Below, one piece after another: positions 6,867 through 54,569 of a stretch of DNA of 64,000 nucleotides. Origin of the DNA: Octopus bimaculoides (lineage: Eukaryota); the NCBI RefSeq assembly GCF_001194135.2, contig NC_069000.1, positions 7,869,087-7,933,086 of the forward strand, in the 5' to 3' direction. Every line of letters begins with the position of its first letter. Position 1 is the first letter of the stretch. Position numbers and translations under genes: made by a program. Under the pieces are notes generated by a model. The model saw only the letters and a list, made by a program, of their open reading frames with translations. It had not been told where the DNA came from and ran no database searches.

Positions 6867-7107
6867 CTGTGATTTCCTTTTTCTCACTGGAGACTTTCAT
6901 TGGTGCCAAGATCATGGGAACACTGCCAAAATATCCATTGGTGACCCCTAATAAGAGAGACGCTAAGACAGCATATCCCTCACCATTTAGTGTTGGTTTG
7001 TGTACTGGCAGGACACACATCATCATCATGGGAACCAAGAGAATTCGGAAACAAGTAAACAGGATAAGACGACCTCGGGGCCAGTCATAAGGAATCGCAG
7101 CAATTAC
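6867..7107 (-). CDS. SLC29A4: SLC29A4 coding exon 7 (VIAAIP...LLGVTNGYFGSVPMILAP...KEIT)
   Basis: ttgcag| and |gtatac; 241 nt, phase 0->1; ENT TM10 motif GxTNGY. Confidence 0.95.
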
Positions 7108-7409
7108 CTGCAAAGCAATCACAATTTAATTACTTTTTAATTACAATTAAAAATTTTATTAAAATGTTCTATAAAGGTGTTACCTTTTTTTTTAACAATG
7201 AAGATTTAAAATACATTTTTTCCATGAGTAGAAGAGAGGAGAAATCATCACTATCATTGTCATCATCATCATGAAATGTCCCCTTTTCCATGCTGGCATG
7301 GATTGGACAATCTGACATGAACTGATAAGCAAGAGGGCTGTGCTAAGTGCCAATGTCCGCTTTGGCATTAGTTTACAGGACATTTATAAAGAAAAAAGAT
7401 ATAGATATA

Positions 7410-7457
7410 GTCTTACAGCTGTTTCTGGGATATTATGGAAATCCCTTCATCAGAGAC
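7410..7457 (-). ncRNA. Minimal type-I hammerhead ribozyme motif with intact core
   Basis: GTCT-CTGATGA-A-GGGAT-ttccataat-ATCCC-A-GAAAC-AGCT-GTA^-AGAC: 4-bp stem I, 5-bp stem II, palindromic stem III. Confidence 0.8.
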
Positions 7458-7762
7458 GATGTGAGATGGTTAAATAGAGGTAAATATTTGAGTTTGAAAT
7501 AAGGAATCATTATGGAAAAGGAGGAGATATTCCCTATCACAAGGCTTTGGTTAGACCGAGACTATAGTAGAAGACATTTGTCCAAGGTGCCACATAATGG
7601 GACTGAACCTAGAACCACTTAGTTGAGAAGCAAGCTTCTTACCACACAGCCATGTCTGCACCTATATAGTAGACCAGCCACCAACTGAGCTACTTCAGCT
7701 TGATTAAATCGAGCCATTCTAGTAAGACCTTATTTAGAAAGAGAGAAATAGGTGAAACTTAC

Positions 7763-7950
7763 TTTGCCAATGAAATCAAATAAATTAAATATAGCCATTA
7801 GAATGACTGGTGTCCAGCTTCGGAGTCGACAGCTGATGATTTGAGATTCAACACCGGGAAACAGAAGCAAGGTTACAAAATAAGCCATTCCAAGAGAAAT
7901 CATATAAGGCCAGACACATTTTGTTGCTTCCCACCGCAATAACAGGGCTC
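7763..7950 (-). CDS. SLC29A4: SLC29A4 coding exon 6 (RALLLRWEATKCVWPYM...FNLFDFIGK)
   Basis: ttccag| and |gtaagt; 188 nt, phase 1->0; ENT motifs YFVTLLLFPG and FNLxDFxGK. Confidence 0.95.
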
Positions 7951-23621: not shown

Positions 23622-23759
23622 TTAAATAAGAGCTAAAAACTGATCCATTGAAAATACTTTATTATGATGACCTATGATCATTTCGATGCAATATCCAGAT
23701 CGATTCATGCATATTATAAAATATGGGATACTGCATCTCCTCAGGGTCTTATTAGTAGA

Positions 23760-24085
23760 AGAATGCTTAGTGGCATTTCATCGGTCTTATTGTTCTGAGT
23801 TCAAATTCCACAGAGGTCAATTTTGTCTTTCATCCTTTCGAGGTCAATAAAATAGGTACCAGTTAAATATTGGGGGTCAATGTCTTCGACCTCCCCCTCC
23901 CCCACAATTGATGGCCTAGTGCCAAAATTTGAAATCAGTATTATCACTTTTATTATTATGATATTTCTGCCGATGTCGACTTTGCCTTTCATGCTTTCGG
24001 AGTTGATAAATTAAGTACCAGTTGAGTACTGGGGTCAATGTAATCGACTTAACCCCCTCTCCCAAAGTTTCAAGCCTATAGAAGA
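23760..24085 (+). mobile_element. Two tandem family B SINE copies
   Basis: Two successive ttgcctttcatc...aagtaccagtt...ggggtcaatgt blocks. Confidence 0.75.
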
Positions 24086-26325: not shown

Positions 26326-26406
26326 GGCTCTGGTGAAGCTATAAGATCTTGCTCAGGCAGTCAACTGTGGGTCCACTGCATCTTGTAGCAGAAACAGCTT
26401 TAAGCT
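26326..26406 (+). ncRNA. Degenerate hammerhead ribozyme motif (core CTGGTGA; TTA triplet)
   Basis: ggct-CTGGTGA-A-gctataagat..32 nt..atcttgtagc-A-GAAAC-AGCT-TTA-agct; 10-bp stem II. Confidence 0.6.
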
Positions 26407-30793: not shown

Positions 30794-30876
30794 AGCTCTG
30801 ATGAAGCTAGCTAAAGTGATAATCAGGCACTCAATTATGAGCACATTGCACCTTATAGCCAAAACAGCTGTAAGCT
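30794..30876 (+). ncRNA. Degenerate hammerhead ribozyme motif (G12->A)
   Basis: agct-CTGATGA-A-gcta...tagc-C-AAAAC-AGCT-GTA-agct; flanks homologous to the 26.3 kb copy. Confidence 0.6.
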
Positions 30877-35845: not shown

Positions 35846-36592
35846 TTAGTTACCGAGGAAGGAAAAAAGGGTAACAGAAAGGACGAGTAAGAAAAGGTGG
35901 AGAAAGATGTAAGGCAAAGGTCTGATGGTAGAACCAATTAGTTCTTCACCGCCAAGATGTTTCGATTGTGGTACATAATGATTATTCAACACTTGACGAA
36001 TGTCTCCGACCATTTTTAGCAGACCCACAGAAATATTCTCATCAGGTAGGAAATGTTGCCCGGCCTTTTCGGTAATTTCCTTGATTAGTTCCAGTGTAAG
36101 AACCTTGCGTGCCGTTTTACCACTGTAGGTCAGTAAAGTATTGTCATCTCGAGAATAGAATAGAATGATTCCTTCCTCGCATCGTTCTTCGTTGAACGAC
36201 CAACGTTGGTCGAGCGAAGAGACAAAATTAATGGCATTGTTCAGTATCGCAATTTGGCTGGTATTGCTGCCTGTCTCGATCTTCTTGGCCAAAATAACTG
36301 AAGTATAGTAGCCTCCAGAGTTGTTCTCACACACCCAGGCACTGCAAGGGCATAGCGTATACTTAACGTTCATTTCTTCCAGCACCAAATTTAGAATGTC
36401 TTTTGCGTTGTTGTCCAATAAACCGTCCGGATCGCACAACCATTCTGGTTTGTTTTGTTTACACAGGACATATTGATTTCTCGGGTGAGGGTAGTTGTCC
36501 GCTCGCCAAACTGGGATGTCTGCAGATAAGAATGTAGGAAGCAGGATCAGGTAAATTCCAAGATGGGCCAGCAGCATCGTAGAGTGTGGCAT
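35846..36592 (-). CDS. MOLO1 (modulator of levamisole receptor-1)/TPM-domain family protein, 248 aa, single coding exon
   Basis: Signal-peptide-like N-terminus; W-x4-YP-x-P...C...W-x-CDPDGLL motif, CPC and later Cys typical of the MOLO1 family; C-terminal hydrophobic tail; ATG in gagccATG context. Confidence 0.8.
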   Translation of the reverse strand: MPHSTMLLAHLGIYLILLPTFLSADIPVWRADNYPHPRNQYVLCKQNKPEWLCDPDGLLDNNAKDILNLVLEEMNVKYTLCPCSAWVCENNSGGYYTSVILAKKIETGSNTSQIAILNNAINFVSSLDQRWSFNEERCEEGIILFYSRDDNTLLTYSGKTARKVLTLELIKEITEKAGQHFLPDENISVGLLKMVGDIRQVLNNHYVPQSKHLGGEELIGSTIRPLPYIFLHLFLLVLSVTLFSFLGN

Positions 36593-38517: not shown

Positions 38518-39135
38518 CATCATCATCGTTTAACGTCTGTTTTCTATGCTGGCATGGGTTGGACGGTTCGACTGGGGTCTAGGAAGTCAGGAGGTTGCAC
38601 CAGGCCCCAATCTGATCTGGCAGTGCCACCAGCCACAGGAACTGGCATCGACCACGATCGGATGGTGCTTTTTACATGCCGCTGGCATGGAAGCCAGTCA
38701 AAGTATATAAAAACATATACTTTATATTTATATAAAAGAAGAAAAAGAAAATGGAGATTGGAAAGTTAATAATTGCTTATTATTAACAGCAAATTAATCA
38801 TTATCCCTTACAGTTGTTTCAAATTAATACTCAGTAAATATTAAATTTATATGACCTGAGCATAATATCTTCAGAGGGAAAAAATATATATATAACCTTA
38901 AAAGCCGCCTGATAGGGTGGATTTTAAGGTAGTTCCTGTGGAGGGCTCTTTCGCCATGATAAATTGCTAACCACTACACACATTTTTTTTCTCTCCTTGT
39001 TCCTTTCTGTGGAAGAGCGTAGGCTCGAAATGTTAAAGACTTTTTCAATTCCTAAGCGTTATACTAAAACATGTTTGTTTTCTACACCACCTGTCTTCGT
39101 CTTTTGTTTTTTTGTGAATTCTCCCTATATATATC

Positions 39136-39874: not shown

Positions 39875-40921
39875 NNNNNNNNNNNNNNNNNNNNNNNNNN
39901 NNNNNNNNNNNNNNNNNNNNNNNNNNNNNNNNNNNNNNNNNNNNNNNNNNNNNNNNNNNNNNNNNNNNNNNNNNNNNNNNNNNNNNNNNNNNNNNNNNNN
40001 NNNNNNNNNNNNNNNNNNNNNNNNNNNNNNNNNNNNNNNNNNNNNNNNNNNNNNNNNNNNNNNNNNNNNNNNNNNNNNNNNNNNNNNNNNNNNNNNNNNN
40101 NNNNNNNNNNNNNNNNNNNNNNNNNNNNNNNNNNNNNNNNNNNNNNNNNNNNNNNNNNNNNNNNNNNNNNNNNNNNNNNNNNNNNNNNNNNNNNNNNNNN
40201 NNNNNNNNNNNNNNNNNNNNNNNNNNNNNNNNNNNNNNNNNNNNNNNNNNNNNNNNNNNNNNNNNNNNNNNNNNNNNNNNNNNNNNNNNNNNNNNNNNNN
40301 NNNNNNNNNNNNNNNNNNNNNNNNNNNNNNNNNNNNNNNNNNNNNNNNNNNNNNNNNNNNNNNNNNATATATATATATATATATATATAATTCAAAGAAT
40401 ATATATACATGTATACACACATATATGTACATACTTACATCTACATGTGTATATATATGCATATCAGGGTACAGGACGTTAGAATAATGAACTACAGACA
40501 ACGGAACGAACACATAGGAAAACGGAAAGCCACTTGGAATATTCCTTCATCAGCTGCCTCTATTCTAACCTGACGTTTCGAAGATAAGACAGAACGTACT
40601 CTAGAATAGTCTCTTCCTGAGTAGTGGATCAACCCACTACACAGAGGATTCCAAGGTGGCAAACACAAACCAAGACAGGAAAAATTGGACAGTGAAAACA
40701 ACATTCAAAAGCCGTACGGCTTTTATATATACACACACATCATCATCATCGTTTAACGTCCGCTTTCCATGCTAGCATGGGTTGGACGATTTGACTGAGG
40801 ACTGGTGAAACCGGATGGCAACACCAGCCTCCAATCTGATTTGACAGAGTTTCTACAGCTGGATGCCCTTCCTAACGCCAACCACTCAGAGAGTGTAGTG
40901 GGTGCTTTTACGTGTCACCTG

Positions 40922-45497: not shown

Positions 45498-46697
45498 TCA
45501 ACGGAGGGTGGAGTTCAAATACCAACTCTTTTCTAAGGCAAACTCGGTTATTGGGTACTGCGATACATCAGGATATTTCTTGGTTATATTTCCTCTAACC
45601 TTTATCAACATATCTGTAATAGACATGTGCTTAGAACACTCACCGAATACACTGACAATTTCTTTGATGAATACAGAGCCTTCTTTAGGGTCCCTAAGGG
45701 AAACATATCCTGGTGATGTTGAATAAGCGATGACTACATCGGAGCGAATAGCAGCTTGGTGATAAGATTCCTTCGAAATTTCATCTCGACATGCCTGGAT
45801 AATGAATAACTTAGGTTTGCCAACCAAAGCAGCACAGTTTTGGGCATTGAAGTAAGCAAGTACATCGTCTAGATTAATGACATTTCCATCAACTCCTACC
45901 AACTGATTTATGTTTTTGCCATGTGTAAGAATGGCAACAACGCAACAATTAGCTTTTTCTAATAATGACATCTGAGAAAATCCCCATAAAGCAAGTTTCA
46001 TATCGATAGCACCTACATTTTCTTTTTTTTCACAAACGAAATCTAATTCCGAGAATAAATTCATCAAATCAATCATATCTTTTTTAGATCCATTGCGGTT
46101 GAAAGAGGCATCTTTAAATGTATCGTTGTTTATAACATAAAACAAACCTTTTGGTTCTGACGACATCTTATAACACGCCAAATGACCGACGGTTGGACCA
46201 CTTTCCTCGCTATTTTCATAACTGGGATCATTCTCTTCATAAAAATAACTGCAGAGTGACTGAGTTTCCTCTTGGGGCGAAAAAGTTATTTCATAATTGT
46301 TTTCATCAAAGTTTTCCGTTGGAGAAATCGGTGAGTTTGATAGTGTCAAATTAGATATACTTTCGTTAATACGTTTATATTCATTTGTGCTCAGTTTGGG
46401 TCTATTTGTTTCTATAAGTTTGTAGACACATTTCGCTATATTATCGGCAATATGTTTCTGTTCGGAGTAAGAGAGACACTGTAAGAATGATACAAAGTGT
46501 TTGTCAGAGCGACGAGGAAGTATATCAATTAATTCTCTAATCTGGGCAGTTCTGTGAGGTTTGGAATCAATTATTTCAATTTGACTAATCGGAAACACGT
46601 TCTCTTCTATGAGAAAATCTCTCAAAGTCGAATATTCGATATTGCGCACGAGAAACACTCGATTTTTGATCAGTGCTTCCATATAAATATGGTTCAT
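45498..46697 (-). CDS. CARD-containing initiator-type caspase (caspase-2/9-like architecture), 399 aa from the first ATG, uninterrupted ORF
   Basis: N-terminal CARD-like helices; p20 with RNGS, THG and QACRD; p10 with YSTSPGYVSLRD and GSVFI. The ORF-track start at 46724 is TTG; first ATG is at 46697. A pyrimidine tract plus AG at 46727-46726 suggests an upstream exon. Confidence 0.9.
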   Translation of the reverse strand: MNHIYMEALIKNRVFLVRNIEYSTLRDFLIEENVFPISQIEIIDSKPHRTAQIRELIDILPRRSDKHFVSFLQCLSYSEQKHIADNIAKCVYKLIETNRPKLSTNEYKRINESISNLTLSNSPISPTENFDENNYEITFSPQEETQSLCSYFYEENDPSYENSEESGPTVGHLACYKMSSEPKGLFYVINNDTFKDASFNRNGSKKDMIDLMNLFSELDFVCEKKENVGAIDMKLALWGFSQMSLLEKANCCVVAILTHGKNINQLVGVDGNVINLDDVLAYFNAQNCAALVGKPKLFIIQACRDEISKESYHQAAIRSDVVIAYSTSPGYVSLRDPKEGSVFIKEIVSVFGECSKHMSITDMLIKVRGNITKKYPDVSQYPITEFALEKSWYLNSTLR

Positions 46698-47391
46698 GGT
46701 TGTTGTTTCATTTTCTAACGTCAAACTAGATTAAAAAAAGGTAACTTATTCGTAAACACCACTTCACGGTTCCTCATGGAAGAATAGAGAGTATTCTTTA
46801 GGGTCCCAGACGGGAACATTTGATATTTTTTTTATCACTCAGTGGAATTTTAATTTAGCGTGACGAAATCTTTTGCTTCGTACTTAAACATACTGTACCA
46901 ATGATAATAGTAATTCCGGGAATTTCATTTCATATAACACCGCTTTACGTCATGATCCACTTTATTCGCTTAGCTCATTGCATGACTTTTAGGGTTTTCC
47001 CCCGAAATATTTATAAGTCACAATGTGACTTAAATATATAATGATATAAGTTGGTATGTGACTATACAGGTGATTTAAATTATAGTAAGTACTCTGATTA
47101 TAGGCCAGTGAATTGCTAGCGCCTACATTAAATGCCTAGTGACTTTTAGCTGTGTGGTAAGCAGTTTGCCTCCCAGCCACAAGGTTCTTGGTTCAGCCCC
47201 ACTGCGTGGCACTTAGGGTAAGTGTCTTTTCCTAGACTCGGGCCAAGCAAAAGCTTTGTGAATTAATTTGGTTAATGGAAACTGAAAGAAGACCGTTATA
47301 TATATATAATTAATAATATCGAAGGGTAATTAGGAATATTAGAAATTTCTACTAGCATGTAAAAATTTAGTCCATAGACTATATATAATTC

Positions 47392-47653: not shown

Positions 47654-50600
47654 ATATATTGGCAATATATCATATATCCGAATAAGAAGCACATTCTTAA
47701 GTGTAGAGCAGTAAAGTATTAAAGCAATAAAGTTAAAGTCTGGTCATAGACTGATCAATGGTTTCGCATCCACGAAAGCCGCAGGCCAAGGAGATAGCCG
47801 TATTTTCCAAATTGGCTCGTCTAGGGGAGACAACCCGTCCTCGCCAACGCCGGAACTTTTATTCACCGATGATCTTTTGTCAAATTGACCGTAACAATTT
47901 ACTATCTCGGAGAATTGTTATTTAAAAACTCTTTGTAGCTTAGTTACGGAAGAATTAGATAATACATGTAAACATTGACCATACAATTTTTATGTCGTAA
48001 CTCTCTACGACAGTCTTCTTTTGACTGATAAAAATATACTGTAAATATTAAATGTACGTAAATAAATTAATTTAGTAAATGATTTCTTTATCTTCATTGC
48101 TTCAACCTATTGATGAAATTTATTTCTGTAACTATTGAAACTGTTATTATAACGTTCAGCGTGCTGGTGTATATAACTCACCATAGCATTTATGTTGTCT
48201 GAGCTAGAATTTATGTATGGTGATAAATACATATAATTAAGTTATAAGTGACGAATTTATCACCACAGGTTCTTGCTAAATAAATAAATAAATATATTAA
48301 TTATATTTTCAAGTCGAACACGTTATAAACAGATTAAATTATCTAATTGTTATAGGTAATTTTCCACCATTATAAATTGCCACTCGTCATAATNNNNNNN
48401 NNNNNNNNNNNNNNNNNNNNNNNNNNNNNNNNNNNNNNNNNNNNNNNNNNNNNNNNNNNNNNNNNNNNNNNNNNNNNNNNNNNNNNNNNNNNNNNNNNNN
48501 NNNNNNNNNNNNNNNNNNNNNNNNNNNNNNNNNNNNNNNNNNNNNNNNNNNNNNNNNNNNNNNNNNNNNNNNNNNNNNNNNNNNNNNNNNNNNNNNNNNN
48601 NNNNNNNNNNNNNNNNNNNNNNNNNNNNNNNNNNNNNNNNNNNNNNNNNNNNNNNNNNNNNNNNNNNNNNNNNNNNNNNNNNNNNNNNNNNNNNNNNNNN
48701 NNNNNNNNNNNNNNNNNNNNNNNNNNNNNNNNNNNNNNNNNNNNNNNNNNNNNNNNNNNNNNNNNNNNNNNNNNNNNNNNNNNNNNNNNNNNNNNNNNNN
48801 NNNNNNNNNNNNNNNNNNNNNNNNNNNNNNNNNNNNNNNNNNNNNNNNNNNNNNNNNNNNNNNNNNNNNNNNNNNNNNNNNNNNNNNNNNNNNNNNNNNN
48901 NATATATATATATCATCACACACACACAGAGCTCCTTCAAGCAATTTACCTGAAGATCCAGTGGGTGCCTATAGGTAAACTCAGAATAGCAAGAAGATGG
49001 TTTGACCAAAGTAATACAAACATATATAGATACAGGGTGCAGGGAATAAATTGCTATGAAATTGCTGCTCCTGTGGTGCAATTTGAAAGCGTTACTAGTA
49101 CTGTTATGAAATATCCACAGGGGCTGTAATTTCATAACCTTACAAGTAACGGTCTTCTATGTTCCTCTCTCAGCCAAGAGGTCTTTGTCTTGAGCGCTTA
49201 TGGGTGCTGGTGTCACATAAAAAGCACCTATGCTGGTGGCACATAAGAGTGTCTAAGCTAGTGCCACATAAAATCACCTGTGTTGGTGTCATCTAAAAGT
49301 GCCCATGCCGGTGCCACGTGAAAGCATCCATACCAGTTCCATGTAAAAGTGTCTGTTCTGGTGCCGTGCACCCAGTTCACTTTGAGAAGAGCTTGCTATT
49401 AGGTAGGGCATCCAGCCACAGAAACGATGCCAAAACAGGCAATTGGAGCCTGGTGCAGCTCTCTGGCTGGCCAGCTCCTGTCAAACTGTCCAACCCTTGC
49501 CAGCATGGAAAACAGACGTTAAAAGATGATGATGATGATCTATCAGTTTGAAAATGAATCTATAATACTGGATGCTTTGGTTAAAATACACACATACACA
49601 TGTATGTATGTGTGCGCGCGCGTGTTCGTCCAATTTGAGAAACCCTGCCAACTTGTTATCTAGCCATGCAACGCTGTCATAGCGCCATTTTCTAAGTTAT
49701 AGAGTTGCATAGCAACACCCTATTAGATTAATTTGAAACGACCTAATTATATAGGGTGTATAAAGCTTCAGAGTTTTAGAAAAAGTTTCACTGAATATCT
49801 ATCTTTCTCTTTAAATTTAAATTTAGAATCGATTGATTTTTAACATCAAGAAATATCAAATTTGTTTGTAGTCTGCTAGAATCATAGAAGTGAGAACCAT
49901 ACATCCAGAATTACCTCCCTTGCCTCTCTGTTACCGCCATTTTCTAATTGTAGAAAATATTTCTTCGAGTCAAATCACAAATCAATTCTTAAATAACTTC
50001 ATCACTTCATGTTTATAATTATAAACAAGAACTTTCTCTTTCGTTGCTTCTCGAATCACTTCGCTGGTGTAACACTGACTGATGCTAAAGCTAGAATAAC
50101 CTCCCTTATTCTAATGCCATCGCCATATTTCTTTCCAAATCTGCGACTTTCGTGCGATGCCGCCGAATTTTACATGTTGCATCCTTTATAAGTATCATGT
50201 TGACACATATCAGGTATTATACATCGTTTCATTATTTAATAACTACTTATACATTTCAGTACATATGAAATAATCTTTTTTTCTTTTGTATGTATGAAAT
50301 AATGTTTAATATGGTCTTCTTTTGATTTGTGTTTACACTCTTTCGTAAATTTAACACAAAATGTTGATGTTTACTTTTTTCAAGTCACTATATATTTTGT
50401 GTTTTTATGTTCCAGCTAATTAGAATTTATTGATACCAACTTTAGAAATTTAGATGGATATTCTGTAGCGACGAACGAAAGTAATCTAATGTTTATATGA
50501 TCAACCGAACATTACTGATATGAAAAATTAAATATTTTTTGTTTCTCTTCTTAATCCAAGTCTACCTAGATGTACCATTGATAAAACTCACGTATTTGAC

Positions 50601-52535: not shown

Positions 52536-54569
52536 ATGGCTGAAAACTTCCAATGTAAATATTGTAATGAAATATTTACATCTTTGGCTGATCTTTCACA
52601 GCATAAAAAAATTCATACTTTCTCGTGTGACATTTGTTCCACTGAATTTTTGTACAAATCTTTATTGTCAACACATCTGAGGACACACCTGAAGAAGCCT
52701 TTCAAATGTGCAATATGTTGTCGCAACTTTGCCAAATCAGTGCAGTTCAATGCACACATGAAAACACATGAGACTGTCCCTTGTTATAAATGCGGTTTCT
52801 GTAGCCTCACTTTCACCACAGCTAGCAATATGCTTTGCCATATTGAAGAACATCTGCGTACCCGGTATCAGTGTGGACTCTGCTCCAAAGGGTTTGAGTT
52901 ACTTGATGACCTTTCTGAACACTTGCGACTGCATTTCAAAATAAAATCTCTTGGACAACGCAGTAAAAGACCAACTGTTGTTAGCAACAGTAAAGAAACT
53001 GTATCGGACCCAACCTCTACGTCAACTGTTGCTGATGTCTCTAAGACGTGTGATCCTAATGAAGATAAAAATGGTGATATCACAACTCTGTCTAAGGATT
53101 GCAACGAAGCAGCTAAGCGCAGTGCTAAAGTGCACCAGTGTGAATACTGCAATGCCACATTTAAACGTAAACATCTGTTGACCACTCATCGGAGAATCCA
53201 TACTGGTGACCGGCCATATAAGTGTAGTTATTGTGATAAGAACTTCAGTCGTTATTATGCAATGGTGGCCCATGAAAGACTCCACACTGGAGAACGTCCG
53301 TATAAATGTAACCAATGTGATAAGTCATTTACTGTCTCTAGTCACTTAAATGTTCATTTCAAACTAAAACATATTGGTTTAAGGCCTCATAAATGTGACA
53401 GATGTGACAAAGCTTACCGTAGTCCAGGAGAGCTTCGCATTCACATCCGTTCTCACACTGGGGACCGACCTTTTTCATGTGAGGTCTGTGGGAAAAACTA
53501 TGCAACCCAATGTTCACTGACCATTCATAAAAAGACGCACTCACCAGACAAAAAACCTTACATTTGTGAATTGTGTGGTCTCTCTTATAAGCAGCCGAGC
53601 AGTTTAAGTGTCCATATGCGTACTTCACATGGAAGTGACAAAGAGAAGAAACATCACTGTGAATTCTGTCAAAAGAGCTTTCATATTGCCGGAAGCCTGC
53701 TGCGGCACCGGCGCATCCACACAAACGAAAGACCTTATTTATGTGATCTTTGTGATAAGTCATTTCGGGAATCTTCAGCTCTCAAAACCCACAAAAGGCG
53801 ACAACATCTTGGTGAACGTCCATATCATTGTGATTGTTGCGACAAGTGTTTCTGTACCCAAACGGATCTTACTAGACACAAAAAAACCCACAAAGGTCTT
53901 GCTGTTCTTTCATCTCTGGCAGTTAGTATTGCTGAAAATAAGCTGAAAGATGTACCTACTTCTCAGTCTCTCTATTCAAAACCTACTGAGGAAATCCAAT
54001 TAACTACTTCACAGCTACCAGTAACCATAGCTCAGCCCGTTGTGTCTCCTCTGACTGTGTCTATCCCACAACAAACAATGTCTCCTTTGACTGTTTCTGT
54101 TACACAAGAAGATCCATCTTCCCTAGCAGTACCCATCACTTCTGTATCGAGCTCTCTAGAAGAAATGTATGTGGTACCTCAAACCCCAAATGAAATAACT
54201 TTGTCTCATGATATTTCATTACACCCCGAAGAAACTTGTGAAATAACTGCTTCTCACGCAGTGCAAATATCTGAACAGTTACAAGATGTGTCGGCTGATG
54301 TGTCAATGCCCACTGTCCAGGATGTGACCTTATCACATGACTCTATGGTGGTTGTCACTGACCAGCAGTCACCTGCTATTGGTTCAATGACATTAACATT
54401 ACCTGTCTCCTCTATCCATCAAACTCTTCCCTTACAAAGTGATGTGGCCCTACATTTTTCACCTCAAATGTCTCTGACCATCCCTAACAGCGTTACTTCG
54501 TCACATTCTGTTGTACCAACCACTTCTCAGACAGTAGCTCTCTCACAAGTGGTCCACTCCCTTACGTAG
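52536..54569 (+). CDS. C2H2 zinc-finger protein, 677 aa, 14 fingers (5+9) plus S/T/P/Q-rich C-terminal tail, single coding exon
   Basis: 14 C-x2-C-x12-H-x3/4-H units counted, with TGE/DRP-type linkers; aaaATGG start; putative acceptor tattttcag ending 52139; AATAAA at 55169-55174. Confidence 0.95.
   Translation: MAENFQCKYCNEIFTSLADLSQHKKIHTFSCDICSTEFLYKSLLSTHLRTHLKKPFKCAICCRNFAKSVQFNAHMKTHETVPCYKCGFCSLTFTTASNMLCHIEEHLRTRYQCGLCSKGFELLDDLSEHLRLHFKIKSLGQRSKRPTVVSNSKETVSDPTSTSTVADVSKTCDPNEDKNGDITTLSKDCNEAAKRSAKVHQCEYCNATFKRKHLLTTHRRIHTGDRPYKCSYCDKNFSRYYAMVAHERLHTGERPYKCNQCDKSFTVSSHLNVHFKLKHIGLRPHKCDRCDKAYRSPGELRIHIRSHTGDRPFSCEVCGKNYATQCSLTIHKKTHSPDKKPYICELCGLSYKQPSSLSVHMRTSHGSDKEKKHHCEFCQKSFHIAGSLLRHRRIHTNERPYLCDLCDKSFRESSALKTHKRRQHLGERPYHCDCCDKCFCTQTDLTRHKKTHKGLAVLSSLAVSIAENKLKDVPTSQSLYSKPTEEIQLTTSQLPVTIAQPVVSPLTVSIPQQTMSPLTVSVTQEDPSSLAVPITSVSSSLEEMYVVPQTPNEITLSHDISLHPEETCEITASHAVQISEQLQDVSADVSMPTVQDVTLSHDSMVVVTDQQSPAIGSMTLTLPVSSIHQTLPLQSDVALHFSPQMSLTIPNSVTSSHSVVPTTSQTVALSQVVHSLT

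Follow-up and report, generated by a model that had tools for sequence, protein, structure and literature searches.

A solitary minimal hammerhead motif in intron 6 of the Octopus bimaculoides ENT4/SLC29A4 gene, probably a drifting relic of a mobile element

Thousands of minimal type-I hammerheads have been described in metazoan genomes, and most of these copies are solitary and "probably related to truncated PLEs", i.e., Penelope-like elements (Cervera & de la Pena 2014, PMC4209133). The same class of motif was treated by Lunse, Weinberg & Breaker (2017), as cited in PMC6765202 and PMC7761336. PLE hammerheads combine a type-I topology and a helix I of 4-5 bp lacking a defined loop 1 with a long helix II, which is closed by G10.1-C11.1 and preceded by an extra nucleotide between A9 and G10.1, and a 2-bp helix III, the palindromic tetraloop of which permits a double hammerhead. 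Their sequences are highly variable, the stems of copies in one genome are compensated, and the copies are mostly solitary and dispersed. Single minimal hammerheads showed no detectable cleavage in vitro, while dimers and trimers showed low cleavage, mostly at non-physiological Mg2+ (PMC4209133). An insertion bias of PLEs toward microsatellites has been reported (PMC8557442). Regarding cephalopods, O. vulgaris harbors 31 recently active PLE families as well as an older PLE expansion at a JC distance of 0.2 (PMC13282606), and 235 Rfam Hammerhead_1 loci were counted in the giant squid genome (PMC6962438); we found no published description of hammerheads in Octopus.

Besides PLEs, type-I hammerheads occur in metazoan non-LTR retrozymes (Cervera & de la Pena 2020, PMC7229834), which are short AT-rich non-coding repeats with scattered and often intronic monomeric derivatives, and which are thought to be derived from PLE pLTRs (Li et al. 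2026, bioRxiv 10.64898/2026.07.22.740005). Retrozymes consist of 170-400 nt units that are repeated in tandem and give rise to circular RNAs, and those of invertebrates are described as having hammerheads with a stable helix III and efficient monomer cleavage (PMC7229834, PMC7761336). Families of 51-972 bp with a variable share of monomers, approximately 43% of them intronic in Xenopus, have also been reported (bioRxiv 10.64898/2026.07.22.740005). The hammerheads of newt satellite 2 and other amphibian repeats have an unstable, short helix III and are active only as a double hammerhead of two units (Forster et al. 1988, as cited in later work); they have canonical sizes of helices I and II with loop-loop contacts, and their arrangement in long tandem arrays guarantees each a partner in cis. 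Sense motifs of mobile-element origin are also found in introns of protein-coding genes, namely, the amniote hammerheads HH9 and HH10 (de la Pena & Garcia-Robles 2010; Garcia-Robles et al. 2012; both as cited in PMC7761336) and the HDV-like ribozyme of CPEB3, for which self-cleavage has been demonstrated (PMC10274809). An effect on mRNA biogenesis has been proposed for these intronic ribozymes, which are reported to be highly conserved across amniotes or mammals.

In the present study, we analyzed a window of 64,000 nt from Octopus bimaculoides (GCF_001194135.2, contig NC_069000.1, 7,869,087-7,933,086 of the forward strand), which contains a complete but minimal and genuine hammerhead motif, referred to here as c7k (Table 1). 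Read on the minus strand from 7457 to 7410, it is GUCU-CUGAUGA-A-GGGAU-UUCCAUAAU-AUCCC-A-GAA-ACAGCUGU-A/AGAC, the slash marking the predicted cut. The core sought was C3 U4 G5 A6 N7 G8 A9 ... G12 A13 A14 A15.1-U16.1 H17 at a three-helix junction, and CUGAUGA, GAAA, the A-U pair, and GUA are all in place among three helices in c7k. Helix III consists of the pairs A15.1-U16.1 and C15.2-G16.2 closed by AGCU, which makes ACAGCUGU an 8-nt palindrome. Stem I is not extendable beyond its 4 bp, the next pair being C.U. The anatomy given in an earlier note on this DNA, namely, the core, 4-bp stem I, GUA triplet, cut at 7414/7413, and palindromic helix III, was confirmed by reading the sequence. The 5 bp that it assigned to stem II are paired, and they are followed by a U.U mismatch and one further pair; since A-U occupies this position in O. 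sinensis and O. vulgaris, giving a stem of 7 bp there, stem II of c7k is preferably regarded as a 7-bp stem interrupted by a single U.U mismatch.

Table 1. Positions of the hammerhead copies, their parts, the host intron, and associated features (window coordinates unless a locus is named)
Feature	Position	Strand	Remarks
c7k, minimal type-I hammerhead motif	7410..7457	-	sequence reading
c7k stem I, 4 bp, GUCU/AGAC	7454-7457 with 7410-7413	-	
c7k first core box CUGAUGA	7447-7453	-	
c7k extra A after first core box	7446	-	
c7k stem II, GGGAU/AUCCC	7441-7445 with 7427-7431	-	
c7k loop 2, UUCCAUAAU	7432-7440	-	
c7k second extra A	7426	-	
c7k GAA	7423-7425	-	
c7k helix III and loop 3, ACAGCUGU	7415-7422	-	
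c7k H17 = A	7414	-	GUA site, predicted cut 7414/7413
c23k, unrelated family, intact canonical core	23669..23748	-	GACC-CUGAGGA-12-bp stem II (G10.1-C11.1)-GAAA-UGAUCA-UA-GGUC
c26k, c7k family	26326..26406	+	GGCU-CUGGUGA-A-10-bp stem II-A-GAAAC-AGCU-UUA-AGCU
c30k, c7k family	30794..30876	+	AGCU-CUGAUGA-A-GCUA..UAGC-C-AAAAC-AGCU-GUA-AGCU
c38k, degenerate relative	38804..38879	-	UCCCU-CUGAAGA-...-GAAAC-AACU-GUA-AGGGA, irregular stem II junction
ENT4 coding exon 7 (VIAAIPYDW...KEITG)	6867..7107	-	Pfam Nucleoside_tran, match to ENT4 isoform X1
ENT4/SLC29A4 intron between coding exons 6 and 7, 655 nt	7108..7762	-	GTAAGT...TTTGCAG ends
ENT4 coding exon 6 (...FNLFDFIGK)	7763..7950	-	Pfam Nucleoside_tran, match to ENT4 isoform X1
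3' part of second SINE family, then (ATG)n tail, downstream of c7k	7244..7368	-	
3'-truncated SINE copy, just upstream of c7k in RNA sense	7537..7669	-	
Orthologous intron 6, O. sinensis	L124 16814-18285		compared with window 7108-7762
Orthologous intron 6, O. vulgaris	L126 17851-18924		compared with window 7108-7762
c7k orthologue, O. sinensis intron 6	L124 17079-17126	sense	intact
c7k orthologue, O. vulgaris intron 6	L126 18116-18163	sense	intact
Element on metagenome contig L112	L112 1-2574		compact 2.57-kb element, 702-aa ORF between identical direct repeats

The traits listed above for PLE hammerheads recur in c7k, including the extra nucleotide between A9 and G10.1 (A7446, followed by the pair G7445-C7427), which agrees with the likeness to minimal type-I PLE hammerheads acting as dimers that had been pointed out previously. 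One A after A9 and one A ahead of G12 are unpaired in c7k; the latter departs from the trait list of PMC4209133, and an unpaired nucleotide between C11.1 and G12 is also found in two related copies of the window (A in c7k and c26k, C in c30k). Also unlike PLE hammerheads, c7k has no demonstrable PLE ORF or pLTR next to it. It shares with retrozymes the type-I hammerhead, the short AT-rich non-coding repeat, and the scattered, often intronic monomeric state, and differs from them in being a single unit and in lacking a stable helix III. With the amphibian hammerheads it shares a short, unstable helix III, but not the canonical helices I and II or their contacts, and with HH9, HH10, and the CPEB3 ribozyme its sense position in an intron; unlike the latter, it is conserved only as well as its neutral surroundings, within one genus, and has no stable monomeric fold.

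Regarding the host gene, c7k had been placed in sense in a 655-nt intron 6 of SLC29A4, and this position is borne out by the intron ends, Pfam, and the mapping of exons of ENT4 isoform X1. The gene has the Nucleoside_tran domain (PF01733, 1.3e-21). A 402-aa exon concatenate used as a query had its best match in O. sinensis (96% identity), its top matches in O. sinensis, Argonauta, and many other animals were named equilibrative nucleoside transporter 4, and O. bimaculoides ENT4 isoform X1 is in the same 90% cluster as these matches. The X1 protein maps onto eight minus-strand coding exons, with the c7k intron between the sixth and seventh. Judged by these protein matches, the host gene is ENT4/SLC29A4. 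Two short-exon protein queries retrieved fragments from distant species only, while the 402-aa concatenate retrieved Octopus orthologues; a locus obtained with a short-exon query (L003) was dropped as a comparator because it was too diverged and its introns were too long. From the predicted cut in c7k, the donor is 348 nt upstream and the acceptor 306 nt downstream.

Besides c7k, four further hammerhead-like copies are present in the window, two of which (c26k and c30k) are of the same family. The kinship with these copies at 26.3 and 30.8 kb that had been noted previously holds: c7k, c26k, and c30k have the common architecture CUGAUGA-A, a stem II closed by G..C, N, and GAAAC-AGCU-GUA, with the shared GAAACAGCU box and a 16-nt identity, CAGAAACAGCUGUAAG, and the sequences of stems I and II differ between them while pairing is kept. 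Across the five copies, the stem I pair 1.3-2.3 is A-U, C-G, C-G, G-C, and U-A, four Watson-Crick forms, so that compensated stems, as in a consensus family with covariation, are seen in this small sample from one window. Since the A..A flank of stem II in c7k, which the earlier note had suspected of inactivating the motif, is also present in c26k, with A..C in c30k, it is a family trait and not a private lesion of c7k. The core changes in c26k (A6G and G16.2U) and c30k (G12A) are at invariant positions and, by the consensus, kill the core. These two copies are homologous over approximately 154 nt at 71% identity, and the PLE expansion at a JC distance of 0.2 fits their divergence of approximately 15% per copy. 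The core of c23k is intact and its helix III is the palindromic AUGAUCAU; it abuts a truncated antisense SINE approximately 10 kb upstream of the ENT4 start codon. c38k sits directly downstream of a (TA)n run. For three of the five copies, such a run with n of at least 4 occurs within 60 nt, compared with 10.4% of the window (binomial estimate, p ~0.01). The window also contains ten N runs (e.g., 39875-40366 and 48394-48901), mostly inside (TA)n/(CA)n microsatellites.

A strict descriptor (exact core, stem I of at least 4 bp, stem II of at least 4 bp, short helix III, H not G) had two matches in the window, c7k and c23k (23748..23669), both of which also carry an 8-nt palindromic helix III, a feature outside the descriptor. 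On 400 first-order-Markov windows it had four matches, or 0.01 per window. The copies c26k, c30k, and c38k were added by a one-mismatch relaxation of the core and by reading the 26.3-kb region. None of the Rfam models Hammerhead_1, 3, II, HH9, and HH10 had a match in the window at the gathering threshold. At E<=10, no hammerhead was among the 150 matches listed of the 179 for the whole window, and none matched 7380-7490 alone (111 nt). A search with c23k also returned no hammerhead match; since Rfam misses this canonical core, its negative result reflects insensitive models and is uninformative on c7k.

Taken together, we consider it probable, at approximately 0.8, that c7k is a solo, drifting relic of a PLE or of a non-autonomous derivative, one without appreciable influence on the expression of ENT4. 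Neighboring copies within the parent element would have paired two by two via the palindromic helix III into a double hammerhead, which would have processed the multimeric transcript of the element itself. The sense insertion of c7k in intron 6 of ENT4 probably predates the separation of O. bimaculoides from the lineage of O. sinensis and O. vulgaris, and c7k has probably drifted at the neutral rate of the intron since. In the pre-mRNA, a lone c7k would rarely adopt the active fold, would have no partner, and would be removed with the intron, and it would hence leave ENT4 expression essentially unchanged.

The surroundings of c7k bear on the identity of the parent. Its flanks are SINE fragments and exons, and not a pseudo-LTR of an element encoding RT and a GIY-YIG endonuclease. 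Other window copies of the SINE family found upstream continue with ...GGAAACTGAAAGAAGCC, and the family found downstream has about 10 copies in the window; ARAGORN run on the intron detected no tRNA-like gene in the SINE head. The segment bearing c7k, 7369-7536, has no second copy in the window, and the flanking sequence common to the hammerhead copies consisted of microsatellite and SINE matches only, except for the approximately 154 nt of c26k and c30k. No RT/EN-like ORF of at least 110 aa was found in the window, and no RT or GIY-YIG ORF adjoins any of the five copies. PLE parentage hence rests on resemblance and literature; since most PLE hammerhead copies are solitary according to the literature, the missing RT/EN ORF is compatible with such an origin. 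A candidate degenerate tandem copy upstream of c7k was rejected because the shared TTTCCATAAT was not significant (116/500 shuffles).

Considering the same evidence, the parent may instead have been a short non-autonomous element, such as a retrozyme monomer or a hammerhead SINE like Sm-alpha of Schistosoma, and not an autonomous PLE. We hold this alternative, which departs from the relic reading in the identity of the parent only, to be possible but the less probable one. It agrees with the short shared region of c26k and c30k, with the block of only approximately 97 nt around c7k that is common to three Octopus species, with the lack of an adjoining RT/EN remnant, and with the size range, variable monomers, and intronic share of the retrozyme families cited above. 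Heavily 5'-truncated PLE tails, however, would look identical; no head-to-tail tandem of a 170-400 nt unit, nor any other tandem arrangement, was found in the window, and the stable helix III and efficient monomers of invertebrate retrozyme hammerheads are unlike c7k (PMC7229834, PMC7761336).

As separate observations, c26k and c30k have the same orientation and are 4.47 kb apart, a spacing typical of pseudo-LTRs; inspection by eye of the interval between them showed SINEs, microsatellites, an assembly gap, and a tandem-repeat ORF, with no RT/EN seen. When metagenome contigs were scanned for CUGAUGA..GAAACAGCUGUA, 124 matches were obtained; most of these are due to chance, and 12 fold as hammerheads. 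One contig (L112) carries the compact element listed in Table 1, each repeat of which has a hammerhead in which stem I has 11 bp, stem II is AUC-UUCG-GAU, and GAAACAGCUGUA is present. Its ORF has YRDD, a Cys-rich linker, and a GIY..YIG-like motif; since it had no Pfam or PDB match, it is PLE-like by motif reading only.

The relic reading was further examined in the ENT4 loci of O. sinensis (L124), O. vulgaris (L126), Argonauta hians (L125), and Sepia pharaonis (L127). As to whether other cephalopods retain the motif, which the earlier note had proposed as a check, it is present in O. sinensis and O. vulgaris, while no hammerhead was found in the unalignable ENT4 introns of Argonauta hians and Sepia pharaonis. 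Its presence in three Octopus species makes c7k at least as old as their split, which has been dated to 13-33 My (PMC13282606). None of the three species has lost the core or any pair of stem I or helix III. The O. sinensis and O. vulgaris copies each differ from that of O. bimaculoides at two loop-2 positions, and the cleavage triplet is GUU in O. vulgaris and GUA in O. bimaculoides. The alignment pair 43-51 is A-U in O. sinensis and O. vulgaris and U.U in O. bimaculoides; as far as pairing indicates, one substitution weakens stem II in the latter.

The number of variable columns among the three species is 3/48 in the motif versus 26/434 in the remaining alignable intron. It had been stated beforehand that decay like that of its neighbors would mark c7k as an inert remnant, and decay at this pace is what the orthologues display; by these counts, c7k changes at the background rate of the intron and appears to be drifting neutrally. 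With 10/282, the neighboring 3' segment, which contains SINE sequence, varies even less, and, thus, conservation is not specific to c7k. Purifying selection, as a rate slower than that of the flanking intron, was not detected in this comparison of three close species, the power of which is low, and no covariation was found among the three orthologues, which are too similar to one another. The hammerhead consensus formally allows each of the three substitutions (p roughly 0.04-0.07 under neutrality), which makes weak constraint possible, but is too weak a result for a claim.

Intron 6 is 655 nt in O. bimaculoides, 1472 nt in O. sinensis, and 1074 nt in O. vulgaris, and the gap in size is due to lineage-specific SINE insertions just downstream of c7k and a deletion of approximately 100 nt upstream. 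The ENT4 gene spans 7.9 kb in O. bimaculoides versus 18.5 kb in O. sinensis. For c30k and c38k, no counterpart was found in the syntenic O. sinensis and O. vulgaris loci, the intervals of which are broken by large indels, so that insertion and deletion are indistinguishable. The synteny anchor was a single-exon gene of 248 aa with a MOLO1 domain (PF17175) at 35846-36592 (-) of the window, with annotated orthologues in O. vulgaris and O. sinensis. Separately, O. sinensis and O. vulgaris have an inverted pair of hammerhead-like motifs (CUCUG-CUGAUGA-...-GAAACAAUUUGUU-CAGAG) at a distance of approximately 2.3 kb upstream from the ENT4 ATG (L124 518-592 (-) and 690-764 (+); also L126 and L128), with no counterpart in the window; it resembles inverted arrangements reported for PLE insertions.

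A more consequential possibility is that c7k is an active, co-opted intronic ribozyme, in which two nascent ENT4 pre-mRNAs pair via ACAGCUGU, with stem I also formed in trans. We judge this to be unlikely, and likewise the proposed consequence that the double hammerhead cuts intron 6 before splicing and mRNA output falls when transcription is dense. The sense orientation and complete core of c7k are in line with this possibility, as is the intactness of the motif in three Octopus species, in which the three substitutions avoid the invariant core; expression-tuning intronic ribozymes are also known from CPEB3 (PMC10274809) and from amniote intronic hammerheads (cited in PMC7761336). Cofolding of two c7k copies yielded exactly the double hammerhead (-25.9 kcal/mol versus 2 x -9.1 for the monomers), with a predicted 8-bp intermolecular helix III and stem I also in trans.

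The remaining evidence argues against an active ribozyme. c7k accumulates substitutions as fast as the intron around it, the neighboring SINE fragment is better conserved, stem II is weakened in O. bimaculoides, the triplet is altered in O. vulgaris, and the motif is absent from the ENT4 genes of Argonauta and Sepia. In the predicted minimum free energy fold of the 48-nt monomer (-8.5 kcal/mol), stem I is lengthened and the core CUG is paired with the CAG of helix III, which is a misfold. The predicted occupancy of the hammerhead fold is 1.6e-3 for isolated c7k, 6e-6 with 30-nt flanks, and 7.5e-8 with 100-nt flanks, and the O. sinensis and O. vulgaris orthologues showed a like predicted folding behavior. 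The predicted Kd of the homodimer is approximately 3 uM, and since pairing requires an identical stem I in the partner, the only suitable partner would be another ENT4 transcript; no second c7k copy was found within the gene. Because stem I is open and has only 4 bp, c7k has no loop-loop tertiary contacts, and PLE minimal hammerheads cleave poorly even as dimers (PMC4209133). Nearest-neighbor folding leaves out tertiary contacts of the core and protein chaperones, and the energy models hence argue for weak activity without proving it; on these models, c7k is probably inactive in vivo. The earlier proposal that c7k cuts the pre-mRNA and lowers output was not supported, considering the background rate, the lack of a partner in cis, and the predicted misfolding of the monomer. 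It is also very improbable that c7k is a concentration-dependent switch exerting burst-dependent negative feedback on the monoamine/nucleoside transporter ENT4, and equally so that nascent transcripts at a busy gene reach a micromolar local concentration, form the double hammerhead, and cut intron 6.

A chance match to the hammerhead consensus in an AT-rich intron is effectively refuted: although 0.01 matches per 64-kb window, scaled to an octopus genome of 2-3 Gb, give hundreds of expected chance matches to the descriptor, and Rfam had no match, the window holds two exact-core and three near matches, the palindromic helix III lies outside the requirements of the descriptor, c7k, c26k, and c30k share the 16-nt identity and the A..N flanks of stem II, and the stems are compensated among the copies.

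As a relic, c7k adds one example to the view that PLE-rich animal genomes are littered with minimal hammerheads, many of which are intronic and missed by Rfam. Since Rfam missed every copy tested, including c23k with its canonical core, Rfam counts of cephalopod hammerheads are probably underestimates. Were c7k to cleave in vivo, a retroelement ribozyme would be acting on a host pre-mRNA, which is rare among invertebrates, and hammerheads that function only as dimers would be shown to work between separate transcripts.

Regarding the remainder of the window, the two abundant SINE families present at 7537-7669 and 7244-7368 occur at approximately 10 other sites each and fill introns and intergenic DNA, and a third SINE family with the GAATTTGAACTCAGAAC motif has approximately 10 copies (e.g., 23762-23944). 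A 408-aa ORF with a caspase-like QACRD motif (45498-46724, -) and a 677-aa multi-C2H2 zinc-finger ORF (52536-54569, +) each look like an intronless gene or a long exon.
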